Source of the DNA: Zygnema circumcarinatum SAG 698-1b
Taxonomy: Eukaryota; Plantae; Zygnematophyceae
Assembly: GCA_037447605.1 (NCBI GenBank)
Contig: CM074809.1
Coordinates: 610,689-674,688, forward strand
Direction: 5' to 3'
DNA: 64,000 nucleotides
The notes below the pieces were generated by a model. That model saw only the letters and a list, made by a program, of their open reading frames with translations. It made no database searches and had not been told where the DNA came from. Positions 206-6,029 of this stretch are shown here, piece after piece. The translations under genes were made by a program, and so were the position numbers. Each line of letters opens with the position of its first letter. The stretch's first letter is position 1.

Positions 206-3200
206 ATGTCGATTGGCCGGAAGGGATGGCGCATGAAATCCTCGGTGGTGACGTGTGCGGAGGTATTCTATGACGTAAGATAACTGTGCGCTGTTCAGTT
301 TTGTTCGGGCTCTAGAAGAAGTCAATTTATTGATTTGTTTGACTTGTTTGCTTGACTTGACTTTTTGGACTTGGTTGACTTTGTTGACTTGACCGTGAGG
401 CTTGGTTTACTCGACTGACTTAACTTGACTTTGCAGGGCGCATTTGTTGTTGTTGCTGTTTTTTTTTTTTTTTTCACACAAATTGTTGTCGATGATGACA
501 TATTTGACTTACATGAACTTGAAATTGGCATTTTTTTTTTTTCTCTCTTATCTTTAGATTATGACCCATCTTTTCTTTTTTTTTCTTTCTATTTCTTCCG
601 TCGCCATTGCCTGCAGGATGTTTTCTATTCGACAGTGGAGTTAGATCGAGCAGCTGAAAAGAGGTCCGATGAAGCATGGCAAACTGAAGTGCTTTCTAAT
701 CCGGAAACTGCAGTAAGAACTTTCAAACCACCTTTTCTTTTTAAGTCTTTTCTTTTTCGGAAGTTGGAAGTTGTACATTTCATTTTCAAAGCTAACTCGG
801 AAGGGTTCAAGCATCGTCCCGTTTCTTTCTCTCCTGCAGATTATTCCAGTTTGGAAGGGAAAGAGTTTGGTGAGCAATGAAGGGAGTGGTGTTTTTCTCA
901 ATGGAGAGGAGACTCAGAGCATGCTCAAAGAGGGCCTGCTCTCCTCTCCCATCTTTTTGGGAATAAAGCGCGGAACAGATGCGGCAATTTTTGTTTCTGA
1001 GGTCTGCTGGAATGAAAGGTGCAGAACAGCTTACTCTCTCTCCGGTTTCGCTTCTCCTTTTCTCGTCTACCTTCTCCCACCTACTCCATCTCCCTCTACT
1101 GTCGCCTTCCTCGCTCCTCACTCCCTTCCCTTCCCCTAAGAATCGCCCACTTTAATGCCCCTCCCTTTTCCCTCCTCTCACCTCGCACTCCCCCAACCTC
1201 TCACCCATCTCCTCCTCATCCCACCCTCCCCGCTCTCCGTCATCCTTCCCCTTTCTCCCTCTTGTCCCGCCTCTTCCACCCCCTCCCCCTCGTCCTGCCT
1301 GTACCCCCTTCCCATTCCCCTGCCGCGCTTTCCGTACTCCTCCAGCGCACTTCCCCTCCCTTCCTCTCTTCTCCCTCGCTCCCAGCTTCCCTCCTACCCC
1401 CACCATTCTCCCCCCCTTTCCTCTCCCTCTGCCCTCTCCATTTTTCCCCCACTCCCCCTCTCCCCGTCTACCCCTCTCCCCTTCTCCCCTTCTCCCCCTC
1501 CCTTCCCATCTTCCCCTCTTCCCCTCTCCCCTTCTTCCCCTCTACTCCCCCTCCCCTCTCCCCATCTCCCCCTCTTCCCTCTTCCCCTCTCCTCCCCCTC
1601 CCCTCTCCCCGTCTCTCCCTCTTCCCTTATCCCATTCTCCCCTTCCCTCCCCCTCTCCCCCTCTCCCCCCCTCTCCTCCCCCTCCACTCTCCCCGTCTCT
1701 CCCTCGTCCCTTATCCCATTCTCCCCTTCCCTCCCCCTTTCCCCCTCTCCCCTTCTCNNNNNNNNNNCCTCCCTCCCCCTCCCCCTCCCTGCCCCCCTGA
1801 CAGGCCTCCCGCTGTGCCCGGCGCAGTGCAGTGCAGGCGGCTCGGAGCCCCCCCTCTCCCTCTCTTCGGGGCGCGTCTGGGCGGACCTCCGCCGCGCGGG
1901 GCCGGCGCTGCCGCCCGGGGAGGCGGCGCTGCTCGCGTACGGACGGGGGCTGGGGGAATGGCACGCGCGGAATGTGAGGAGGGGGCATGCATGCATGCAT
2001 GGGGGGGCATGCATGCATCATGACATCATGGCCATCGTTGACTTCATGGTCCAACATCGTCATTGCTACCATCATCATTGTAGACATCAAGCATCGACAT
2101 CATCATGATTGGCATCATCATTGCCTCCAGCAGGTTCTCAAAGTATGGGTGCTTGTTTTTCCCATGCAATCTATAGTCAGTACACTAAGAATGTTGGCTC
2201 TAAGAATTCTGCGGAATTGCTCTGATTCTGCCTAGTTTTTGGTTGTGATGATTTCCTGCTACACACATGTGTGAAAATGTAGATATTTTGCGCTCGCTGC
2301 GCTGCAAAAATGGTCATTTCTGACGGCGGGCACTCGCGAAAATGCTCGTCTCCTTCTTGCGGCTTCTCCATACACCCGCGTCTGGTGAGTGTGTAGAGAA
2401 GAAGATAAGGGAGAGAGAGGAGAGAAGCTGAGAGAGGGGAGAGAGGGAGAGAGAGTGAGAGATAGATAGAGAGCGACGTTTCTTTCCTGTCGGCTCTTGC
2501 TCCGTATTTCCATCGATTTAGATTTTTGGATTTTTGGAGTTCTAGGAAGGATCCTACCCCACCCCCTTTATTTTGTTTTACCTTTTTAAATGCATATTGA
2601 TCTGTCATTTTGCAGGACCCGGCAGTCATTATGCTCATAACATCTGGGGAATATGTACTCCTCGGTCGGCAGGTCATTCTCTGTGAAAACCTTTTCTTCA
2701 AAATCTATAACACAGAGGCCAAAAAAACCCATCAAGCCTTGAGTGTTTAATTCGTTGACTCGGAATTTTGATAATTTTCATGTCTCCTCTTGAAAAAGGT
2801 GCCAATCGGTGTTTTTGCAAAACTTGAAGTTGTAAGTTGGCTCTGAGAGAGAGAGAGAGAGAGGGTGAGGGAGACGGGTCTGCAGGAGAGGTGGGCGACG
2901 GGTCGCTTTTCGCTGCTTGCAGGATTCATGGAGGTGGGAGAGACCTTCGAGATGGCTCTCTGTAGGGAAGTGGAGGAGGAGGCAGGCATCCATGTGCAGC
3001 CAAACTCAATCAGGTCTCTCCCTCTCCCTCTCTTTCTCCCCTCCCCTCTCTATCACTCTCTTTCTCTCTCTCTCTCGCTCTCTTTCTCCCTCTCCCCCCC
3101 TCCTCTCCTCTCCCCCTCCCTCGCAAGGTCACCACTGTCACTGAGTTCTGCCGCTTCTGCGCTATAAAAACGCAATCTGCCTGCACTCCTCCTCAACCCC

Positions 3201-3211
3201 ACTCCCCTCTC

Positions 3212-3295
<84 letters not shown>

Positions 3296-3307
3296 CCCCT
3301 ATCTCTC

Positions 3308-3353
<46 letters not shown>

Positions 3354-4874
3354 CCCTCACCCCCCTCTCTCTGCGCTCCCCCACACATGCAGGTACATTG
3401 CCAGTCAGCCATGGCCTTTCCCTTCCTCCCTCATGATCGGCTTCACCGGTGAAGCTGCTCCTTCTTCAGAGCTTCGAAAAGATGCAGCCATGGCTGCCGT
3501 GCCTGCGGGAGGCACTGTGGATGAGAGAGGCCGCCCAGTGGCCTTAACAGCCGAGGAGAGGGAGAGGGCTTTAGGAGAAGCAAGAGCTCTCCAATCACCA
3601 ACTGTTGACAAGAATGAACTGGAGGTATAAGGACTGAAACATTTGTTTTCAATACTCCAGAATCCTAAAGTGCTGAAATTAGAAAATATCATATTTTTCA
3701 AAAAGTTCAAACACCTTGGCTGTCGACTCTAGTCAACTATGGAAAGTGTCGAGTTATGAAATGCGAAGAGAAAAATCAAATGACGAAAATTTGAATCCTG
3801 CAAAGGTTTTCGTTTTGCAGGATGCGCGGTGGGTGCATAAAAATTTCATCAGGGCAGCGGTAGGATTGGGTAATGTGCGGCTGCCCGAAGAAACAAATTT
3901 TAGCCTGCCCGGAAAGTACGCCATAGCCCGCATTTTGCTGGAAAGATGGGCGGAGCTTCCACCAATGGGGTGCGAGAGATGGGCCGGTGACGATATTGCT
4001 GACGTCATCATTGACACGGGTGAATTGCCGCCCCTCAAACTCAAACTTTCCAATGAGCATAAAAATCTCCGAAAGGGTAGTGGGTTTTTTCATTCGTTTT
4101 TTTGGGGTCTCTCCGGATTTTTTTCTTGCTATTCCTGCTTCAGGGCACTTCGAGCGGGCTGTAATTTATTTCACTTCTCTCAGTTATGGGCTACTTTTTT
4201 TTTTTTCATTCACCAATTAGAAGTTCACATCTTATTCAAATTTGAAATTGCTCGCTTTCAGGGCGGTTCAAGTACGTCCTCTGCCGTGTTGCAGATGGGG
4301 ATGGAAATTCCAAATTGGTACTGTTCTCAACACCCCCTCCCCCTCACTTCTTTTTTTTTTGGTATAATGTGAACCTAAGACCTTGTAGACTTTTAGGTGC
4401 TGTGATTTCTTTTGCTTTTTTATGGTCTGGGGTCTCTATGTATAGAACGTTCAGTTGTGTTTTGTGTGCAGGTGGTGAGGGGAGACAGACGGAACGCTTT
4501 CCACATGGACGTCTTGGAGGGGCTGCGTCAAGCCTGCCAACCTCTCGGGCTGATAGTGAGNNNNNNNNNNCCTCCCTCTTCGCCCCTCCCCCTCCCAAGT
4601 TCACCAATGAGCAAGGGAGAATATGTTGTCCTCCACGTGAGAGGTGCAGCTAACTGCGGGGCTCCGCCTGAGTGCCGTTTTCTTACCAACTAGGGTTTCC
4701 ATGCAGGCGGTTCCGTTGGGGGGCGGACGGATGGAGCACCTTTTCGAAGAGGGCACAGTCAGCATTTACGGATATTCGCAAGCATTCGGGCAGGCGGAGC
4801 ATGACGTCAGCGCAGCCCTTGTCCGAAGGTGGTATCCGTTCCATGACATCAGCACTTCCAATGAGGGCTATTGA
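206..4874 (+). CDS. NUDX19-like: NudC-family NADH pyrophosphatase (NUDX19-like; Zn ribbon + Nudix) fused to a C-terminal Janus/Ocnus (PHPT1-like phosphohistidine phosphatase) domain; 5' end uncertain
   Basis: Phase-consistent exons: 617-712, 840-1001, 1827-1973, 2283-2384, 2616-2672, 2886-3013, 3393-3624, 3821-4019, 4262-4317, 4472-4555, 4707-4874, plus a probable transit-peptide exon ending at 262 (in-frame ATG at 206 or 233, or further upstream). Motifs: LDRAAEKRSD, WADLRR, GEWH, zinc ribbon FCARC...RKCSSPSC, HPRLDPAVIML, Nudix box GFMEVGETFEMALCREVEEEAG, SQPWPFP, ELEDARW. These are followed by IADVIIDTGRFKYVLCRV, VVRGDRRNAFHMDV, LGGGRMEH, IYGYSQAFGQAEH and SNEGY-stop. Confidence 0.9.
322..432 (+). 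repeat. (TTGAC)n-type degenerate array in the presumed first intron of the NudC gene
   Basis: Repeated ttgac/ttgact units read directly from the sequence. Confidence 0.85.
1140..1790 (+). repeat. Long C/T-rich low-complexity intronic tract with an internal ~60-bp duplication
   Basis: Almost pure pyrimidine. The segment ...tcccttatcccattctccccttccctccccct... occurs twice (~1600-1670 and ~1685-1755). Confidence 0.85.
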
Positions 4875-6029
4875 AAATAGGACTCGTCCCTTTGTTTTGC
4901 TGCCCCTTCCCATTTCCCGCTCCTGTTGTTCCTCCTTTGGGGTAAAAATCGCCCTTCCTTAAATTTACAGTTGACATTGGTACGGTTTTCAAAGGGTTTT
5001 AAGGTAACGTTTATAGAAAGCAAACGGAGCAGGATATGATGACTCGTGGTGATGGTGTTTTCGGAACTCTGGGGAGGAAGCTGGTTTTTAGTGATTACGT
5101 TATTGGTACTAATGTTCATGATCCAATCACGAAAGTCCACGTGGGAATAGAAGCTTACGTGGCAAGCTTGGATTGGCTGATACAATCGCTGGCACCCCCT
5201 CCCTCTCCCATCTGTCCTCCGGACTACATCACACATGGAACCAAATGGGAGCGCACTGAAATGTTCACTGAAAAAGAAAACTATTTCGTAGCGTATCCGG
5301 CAAACCCGTTGGTACTGGTAACGTCCCAGAATGCATCTTCATTTGTTCGTTTCGGCGCGTAGTGGAAATTGTCAAATTATGAGTTGAGGATTCGTACGGC
5401 AATGTGTACGAAAATGTTCGAAAACGTACGGATACATATGGGTAGGGTTGAATCTGGATCGGGGCGTACGGTATCGGCCCGTGAATCTTGTGATCATGTC
5501 AGACGGAGACAAATCGAACTGAAGATGCTTCTTCAGTAATACTGAAGATGGGATAGATGGAGCACTTTTTTGCAGTCATATGGCGATATCTTCAGTGTAC
5601 TCGTTTGGATTTAAGCTACGAAGGATTTTCTTCAGTAATACGGAAGATATGCATCGCTGTTTTGGTACGTGGCAGCAGGACTTACCGATGACGTCGCTTC
5701 GTCAGATGTGACGTCACCATCTCAGGTGTGACGTTGAGGGCAACGGCCCCTGTCAAGGATTATGTCGGTGCAATGTCGGTGGAAATTTTGGTTTGTCGGT
5801 TGTACGTCAGTAATCGTCAGCATGATGCTGAAGTATTCAAATGCTGTCATAACCGCGTGATGGCGAAAAAGACAAGAGGCACCGACTGCCACGCGTCGGT
5901 CTGTGCGCGTTGTTCGGTAGCAGCGTGGGAACTCACTTCACGACAAATGTGGTTTCAAGATTTTAGGATCTCTAAAACCCTTAATCGGTCCACACGGACG
6001 ATGACTGGCAAATGCCAGGGCGGAATTCG

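Follow-up and report, generated by a model that had tools for sequence, protein, structure and literature searches.

Does a single gene of the streptophyte alga Zygnema circumcarinatum SAG 698-1b encode both a NudC-type NAD(P)H pyrophosphatase and a phosphohistidine phosphatase of the PHPT1/Janus (Ocnus) family, and if so, what might the two be doing on one polypeptide? The question is raised by a plus-strand gene at positions 206-4874 of a stretch of 64,000 nucleotides, hereafter the window (positions 610,689 to 674,688 of contig CM074809.1, assembly GCA_037447605.1), which a preliminary description, made from its letters only, had presented as an in-frame fusion of these two enzymes. The model adopted here (model B) is consistent in frame and consists of 12 exons separated by short GT..AG introns, encoding about 503 amino acids; exon ends were set by GT..AG boundaries, and model B was chosen as the best fit to homologous proteins. 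The NudC-PHPT1 fusion is real, and it is expressed from one spliced gene. By its domain order and alignments, the gene adds an orthologue to an architecture that is already published and widely distributed, namely subgroup II of the plant SQPWP Nudix hydrolases.

The exons named in the preliminary description and the in-frame splice between the two halves are borne out by the reading frame, the GT..AG ends and RNA joints. The last codon of exon 9 has only its first base there, at position 4019, and is completed by two bases from exon 10, giving ...IIDTG/RFKYVLCRV... with no stop codon. The boundary between the domains does not fall at an intron: a single exon, exon 9, holds the last helix of NudC (LPGKYAIARILLERW) as well as the residues with which the PHPT1 fold opens (IADVIIDTG), and the NudC-to-PHPT1 linker is conserved in the aligned homologues.

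The stretch at issue is present in seven public runs of the same organism, four of which, from three studies, were compared in detail; the runs are taken to derive from spliced RNA, because their contigs lose introns at exact GT..AG boundaries. In one run (X1), a single contig of 2045 nucleotides (nt) spans exons 8, 9, 10, 11 and 12 and continues for 1031 nt further upstream and 246 nt downstream, which is about the size of a complete mRNA. The joints 3624/3821, 4019/4262, 4317/4472 and 4555/4707, all of them GT..AG, were found in all four runs, and they include the junction (4019/4262) at which the preliminary description had proposed that transcripts be inspected. The contig end preceding exon 8 corresponds to window positions 2981-3010, the 3′ end of exon 7, so that exons 7 and 8 are joined as well.

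An artefact of assembly or gene modelling, by which two neighbouring genes would have been joined over gaps or by a chimeric contig, might be suspected because there are two assembly gaps within the span and contigs of short reads can be chimeric. It is effectively refuted by the position of the domain junction within a single exon in a continuous frame, the intronic position of both gaps, the identity of the joints in four runs from three studies, and the existence of collinear orthologues in many independent genomes. The gap at 4561-4570 starts directly after the donor GTGAG (4556-4560); RNA contigs of the four runs join 4555 to 4707, and the number of residues from the catalytic histidine to GGGR across the gap is that of human PHPT1, so the gap is intronic and harmless. 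Around the gap at 1758-1767, no conserved segment is missing between exons 3 and 4 in an alignment with ten full-length homologues, and the RNA contig is too short to accommodate a large coding insertion; this gap probably lies harmlessly within intron 3.

Intron 9 (4020-4261), which separates the fusion exon from the remainder of the PHPT1 domain, also appears in unspliced contigs of 300 nt over 3991-4290 in three of the four runs, at depths of 6.8-15.5 compared with 68-89 for the spliced form. These contigs reach roughly 10-20% of the spliced depth, contig depth being a rough measure only, and are steadier across runs than those of introns 8 and 10. Translation of a transcript that kept intron 9 would continue through the intron without a stop but in a shifted frame, and the PHPT1 domain would be lost. 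In exon 9, an in-frame ATG (PPMGCERW, 3968-3976) is located about 20 codons before FKYV, at the distance of the start methionine of stand-alone human PHPT1. Either retention of intron 9 or initiation at the internal methionine could in principle yield separate NudC-only and PHPT1-only proteins, with the fusion not the main form, but this is highly improbable: by the same rough measure the spliced form is 5-10 times deeper, unspliced contigs occur at a low level for other introns too, as expected of pre-mRNA, the internal methionine is not conserved in homologues, and the fused architecture is conserved throughout the green lineage. Most simply, the unspliced contigs of intron 9 are pre-mRNA, and the internal methionine probably occurs by chance.

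Domain profiles were scored exon by exon and on orthologues rather than on the spliced protein as a whole, and Pfam matches to NUDIX-like, zinc ribbon, NUDIX and Ocnus were obtained, as the fusion predicted. The order of these four domains on one polypeptide is the one by which subgroup II is recognized. In the PHPT1 half, exon 12, which reads LGGGRMEH...YGYSQAFGQAEH...SNEGY followed by the stop codon, matches positions 65-105 of the Ocnus profile PF05005 (E 1.1e-11, 45.2 bits against a cut-off of 23) and, among PDB sequences, residues 74-125 of human PHPT1 (4e-10). The match of exon 11 to PF05005 (positions 34-60, E 0.079) adjoins that of exon 12; exon 11 alone gave only a chance match against PDB sequences. 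The N-terminal half of the domain was mapped to human PHPT1 by way of the orthologue from Spirogloea. The active-site residues of human PHPT1 include Lys21, His53, Arg78, Ser94 and Ala96 (PMC4817053). H431, within VRGDRRNAFH, is the equivalent of His53 at the same spacing from the equivalent of R45, in agreement with the earlier impression that the catalytic histidine had been kept, and it is kept in all 27 of the fusion relatives compared. The equivalents of Lys21, Arg78, Ser94 and Ala96 are all present (K405, R456, S472 and A474), as are those of R45 and H102. Among the 27 fusion representatives, the equivalents of K21, S94 and H102 are as invariant as that of H53, and the equivalent of R78 is present in 26.

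In the NudC half, exon 4 matches the NUDIX-like profile PF09296 (E 1.1e-4, 23.3 bits against a cut-off of 22), and exons 2-4 are collinear with homologues in which the NUDIX-like match reaches 8.6e-17. Exon 5 matches Zn_ribbon_NUD (PF09297; E 8.2e-9, 35.5 bits against a cut-off of 24.8) with all four cysteines kept (CARC...CSSPSC, model residues 165-188), and exon 7 matches NUDIX (PF00293; E 1.3e-7). The Nudix box GX5EX7REUXEEXGU is found at model residues 228-249 (GFMEVGETFEMALCREVEEEAG), and downstream of it SQPWPFPSS at residues 262-270 aligns, within exon 8, to the SQPWPFP block of the NudC/NUDT12 structures 8zb3, 5iw4 and 6scx. The NCBIfam equivalog profile for NudC, NF001299, is matched consecutively by exon 7 (positions 155-191, 1.7e-13) and exon 8 (positions 195-223); taken separately these exons score 50.6 and 33.2 bits, the cut-off of 158 being meant for whole proteins, and this cut-off is exceeded by the orthologues P0039 (189.7 bits) and P0001 (162 bits). 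The glutamate of the Nudix box and its RE..EE are kept in 27 of 27 fusion representatives, and the positions of SQPWPFPxS in 23-26 of them. No more than about five of the 27 retain the zinc-ribbon cysteines, which streptophyte members have kept and most chlorophyte members have lost. Judging from these residues, both catalytic centres are intact in the window protein.

An insertion of about 45 amino acids lies 3′ of SQPWPFPxS (model residues ~277-325, window 3440-3600, exon 8). It is absent from NudC of Escherichia coli, has a loose G..A...GL..EE pattern that is common to most members of the fusion family, and may be a hallmark of subgroup II.

The coordinates of the exons and of the two introns that contain assembly gaps are listed in Table 1.

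Table 1. Exons and gap-containing introns of the NudC-PHPT1 fusion gene, in window coordinates
Feature	Coordinates	Strand	Content and basis
Exon 1	206..274	+	First in-frame ATG at 206; donor GTAAGA at 275; N-terminus provisional
Exon 2	617..712	+	Start of the N-terminal NUDIX-like region; AG/GT boundaries, open frame, aligns to homologues
Exon 3	840..1018	+	NUDIX-like region; canonical donor AAAG/GTGCAG at 1019; collinear with homologues
Intron 3	1019..1831	+	CT-rich, low-complexity; contains the assembly gap 1758-1767
Exon 4	1832..1973	+	End of the NUDIX-like domain; Pfam PF09296
Exon 5	2283..2384	+	NudC zinc ribbon with four Cys (CxxC...CxxxxC); Pfam PF09297
Exon 6	2616..2672	+	First NUDIX strand; aligns to the conserved DPAVI...LLGR block of homologues
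Exon 7	2886..3013	+	Nudix box GX5EX7REUXEEXGU; Pfam PF00293; 3′ end joined to exon 8 in RNA contigs
Exon 8	3393..3624	+	SQPWPFPSS motif and subgroup-specific insertion of ~45 aa (amino acids); RNA joint 3624/3821
Exon 9	3821..4019	+	Fusion point: NudC C-terminal helix and first PHPT1 residues; RNA joints on both sides
Exon 10	4262..4317	+	PHPT1 strand with K21 equivalent (FKYV); joint 4019/4262 in four runs
Exon 11	4472..4555	+	PHPT1 R45 and catalytic H53 equivalents (VRG......H); encodes VVRGDRRNAFHMDV; joints on both sides
Intron 11	4556..4706	+	Contains the assembly gap 4561-4570; excised GT..AG in four runs
Exon 12	4707..4874	+	PHPT1 C-terminal half (GGGR, YGYS, H102 equivalent, terminal GY) and stop codon

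Intron 3 is required because the frame of exon 3 runs into a stop codon at 1137-1139. The acceptor at 1832 used in model B fits the homologues without an insertion. Two other solutions were rejected: model A (a GC donor at 1021 and an acceptor at 1804; pairing 1020/1804) has a poor non-canonical donor and adds ten residues with no counterpart in any homologue; an in-phase acceptor at 1346, by which the CT-rich stretch would be coding, would need approximately 1256 nt of mRNA upstream where the RNA contig has 1031 nt. Introns 3 and 7 (1020-1800 and 3010-3370) consist of CT-rich low-complexity sequence with long (CT)n runs, in which there are several frames with no stop codon over more than 300 codons (open reading frames 1019-2023 and 1155-2108), and these could mislead gene callers. 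When the open reading frame of 317 amino acids that holds exon 4 (its region 218-273) was submitted to a protein word search, none of 231 candidates was significant in a collection that apparently lacks the proteome of this organism. Downstream of the gene, an open reading frame of 108 amino acids at 5036-5362 (plus strand) begins within the 3′ untranslated region that the RNA contig suggests (to about 5146).

At the other end of the gene, the ATG at 206 is the first in-frame ATG downstream of in-frame stop codons at 71-73 and 86-88. The RNA contig implies about 261 nt on the 5′ side of this ATG and the window holds 205 nt, so either the transcription start or a further 5′ exon lies beyond the window. 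The model has about 24 residues ahead of the conserved core and homologues carry 60-90 more N-terminal residues; the true start may be further upstream than ATG 206 and the N-terminus of the protein longer than modelled. Just 5′ of the start codon, at 30-110, are degenerate repeats resembling plant-type telomeres (TTTAGGG / GTTAGGG, then TTCAGG), which fall in the 5′ untranslated region as implied by the length of the RNA contig.

How widespread is the fusion? An exhaustive HMMER search with exon 12 recovered 266 proteins at E <= 1e-3; among the best 150 of these, 32 are at least 370 amino acids long, nearly all with the match at their C-terminus. When 36 long representatives with an Ocnus match were scanned with Pfam, Ocnus was confirmed in all 36 and NUDIX was also present in 30. 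Over its whole length the window model can be aligned with P0001 of Mesotaenium endlicherianum, the best match at 47% identity over 536 columns, and with more than 25 other full-length fusions; the 47% is a ceiling that applies to representatives of clusters formed at 50%. The fusion members named, without exception Viridiplantae, are from Mesotaenium, Spirogloea, Psilotum, Mesostigma, Chlorokybus, Myrmecia, Volvox, Gonium, Chlamydomonas, a pedinophyte and Nannochloris, and they carry the automatic UniProt name NAD(+) diphosphatase. A quick maximum-likelihood tree, which had no subgroup I outgroup, joined the window model with Mesotaenium and Spirogloea (SH-aLRT, the Shimodaira-Hasegawa-like approximate likelihood ratio test, 88) and then with Psilotum in a streptophyte clade (98); this placement with zygnematophytes indicates vertical descent.

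Two of these relatives have peculiarities of their own. P0039, from the EukProt transcriptome of Psilotum nudum, is a complete NudC-PHPT1 fusion with a tree position beside the zygnematophytes; if it is not contamination, it extends the published range from algae and moss to vascular plants. P0001 (Mesotaenium ME000056S08357) has the segment VEPLGGGRIEHRLDEGAIH tandemly doubled at residues ~505-543, unique among the family members and probably an artefact of annotation or assembly in the Mesotaenium genome.

The preliminary description left it open whether the architecture had been catalogued; it was published in 2016 for algae and Physcomitrella (PMC5118724), and public proteomes commonly contain it. 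Maruta et al. (2016, Sci Rep 6:37432) divided the plant SQPWP Nudix hydrolases into two subgroups, nearly all members of subgroup II having an extra Ocnus ("Oncus") domain (PMC5118724). Domain coordinates were given for examples from Klebsormidium, Physcomitrella, Coccomyxa, Chlamydomonas and Volvox, and subgroup II was lacking in the higher plants surveyed; the extra domain was described only as the Drosophila testis-specific Janus/Ocnus family, and no biochemistry of subgroup II was included (PMC5118724). Literature searches in which PHPT1 or phosphohistidine phosphatase was combined with Nudix, Arabidopsis, Chlamydomonas, algae or moss turned up neither a functional study of the fusion nor a paper later than 2016 on the fusion or on any plant PHPT1 homologue, and the fusion is unmentioned in a 2019 phylogeny of NADH diphosphatases. 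The earlier statement that PHPT1 homologues are uncharacterised in land plants is upheld insofar as no characterising paper was found, but homologues do exist in land plants such as Physcomitrella.

The window protein has the same domain order and the same ...GY C-terminus as the published subgroup II (B) proteins (Klebsormidium kfl00032_0450, Physcomitrella Pp3c14_12120, Chlamydomonas Cre13.g582476, and those of Coccomyxa and Volvox). At about 503 amino acids it is similar in size to the streptophyte members, which have 533-551; the model is without their N-terminal extension of 60-90 amino acids, which the window may have cut off. Unlike most chlorophyte members, it retains all four zinc-ribbon cysteines.

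AtNUDX19, E. coli NudC, human NUDT12 and NUDT13 are NAD(P)H pyrophosphatases, two of which, NudC and NUDT12, are able to decap NAD-capped RNA as well. The window protein shares with these enzymes the NUDIX-like domain, the zinc ribbon, the Nudix box and SQPWPFPxS, whereas they end after NUDIX and the window protein continues into the PHPT1 domain; the insertion after SQPWPFPxS also sets it apart from enzymes of the AtNUDX19/NudC/NUDT12 type. AtNUDX19 and NUDT12 have a C-terminal peroxisomal signal, whereas the window protein ends in EGY, with no tripeptide resembling a type 1 peroxisomal targeting signal. Human PHPT1 (14 kDa, PDB 2ai6) is collinear with the window domain over residues 9-125, with equivalents of K21, R45, H53, R78, S94, A96 and H102 present, but it is a stand-alone protein of 125 amino acids, whereas the window domain forms the C-terminal part of a larger Nudix enzyme, with A54 replaced by methionine. 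Janus/Ocnus of Drosophila belongs to the same family as the C-terminal domain. Solved structures exist for the families of both domains.

Taken together, the expressed locus is likely a nuclear gene of a streptophyte (zygnematophyte-like), a subgroup II orthologue that combines a NudC pyrophosphatase with a PHPT1 domain in what would be one bifunctional enzyme. The fusion is old in the green lineage and vertically inherited, and the seed plants covered by the 2016 survey lack it. Its Nudix module is predicted to split NAD(P)H, and perhaps NAD-capped RNA too, at the pyrophosphate bond by means of the metal-binding glutamates of the Nudix box; its PHPT1 module is predicted to hydrolyse P-N bonds, for example in protein phosphohistidine (pHis), by means of the H53-equivalent histidine together with the equivalents of K21, R78 and S94. 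The enzyme would probably be organellar, as predicted for the published fusion orthologues, which were assigned to mitochondria or chloroplasts (PMC5118724). NAD(P)H turnover and pHis phosphatase activity may be coupled.

Several points weigh against this interpretation. The N-terminus of the window model is provisional, and hence so is any targeting signal; the boundary between exons 3 and 4 and the placement of the gap at 1758-1767 rest on alignment with homologues, not on reads; the runs are not recorded as RNA; and the unspliced contigs of intron 9 may represent a minor isoform without the PHPT1 domain. In the PHPT1 domain itself, the position of A54 is occupied by methionine, though only the backbone NH of A54 is implicated, and the R45 equivalent is kept in 20 of the 27 fusion representatives, the other seven having tryptophan. 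No enzyme assay is on record for any member of the fusion family.

The tryptophan in seven of 27 representatives also bears on another reading, which accepts the fusion but gives its PHPT1-type domain a different substrate, a small phosphoramidate or some other Nudix-linked metabolite, or else a role as a regulatory or oligomerisation module of the NudC dimer. No plant protein substrate is known, and in mycobacterial MutT1 the second domain, of histidine-phosphatase type, supports the Nudix activity and is not itself a pHis phosphatase (PMC11784022). Such a role is nevertheless rather improbable, considering that the equivalents of K21, H53, S94 and H102 never vary between distant green lineages and that of R78 hardly ever does, a pattern which fits catalysis of the PHPT1 type (PMC4817053).

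MutT1 is also a useful functional comparison for the bifunctional enzyme envisaged here. It consists of a Nudix domain and an RHG histidine-phosphatase domain and acts on phospho-NDK (PMC11784022, PMC12407098), its pHis phosphatase activity being assigned to the Nudix domain itself (PMC11784022). The two proteins are alike in outline, each having a Nudix hydrolase and a phosphohistidine-related phosphatase module on one polypeptide, with control of a nucleotide pool; they differ in that the second domains have unrelated folds (RHG/SixA-type in MutT1, Janus/PHPT1-type here) and the Nudix domains belong to different subfamilies (MutT and NudC). The likeness is one of analogy, not homology, and suggests nucleoside diphosphate kinase (NDPK) as a first candidate substrate; an enzyme with a phosphohistidine intermediate, such as NDPK, would be a reasonable guess at the target. 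A more ambitious proposal, which we regard as doubtful, is that the fusion might serve the green lineage as its chief, or even its sole, phosphohistidine phosphatase of the PHPT1 type, coupling hydrolysis of NAD(P)H or NAD caps to dephosphorylation of organellar pHis enzymes such as NDPK; it would then be a convergent counterpart of MutT1-NDK, and a branch of pHis signalling outside two-component systems that was later lost in seed plants.

Considered by itself, the gene is one more ordinary orthologue with an architecture that has already been catalogued and will be unsurprising to specialists who use Pfam or InterPro architectures, and its interest lies only in its biochemistry. No characterised PHPT1-type phosphatase of plants or algae was found in the literature, and a conserved fusion is a classic hint of two activities that work together. 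With catalytic residues invariant in both halves over green algae, a moss and a fern, the family offers a cheap and well-defined biochemical target in Chlamydomonas or Physcomitrium.

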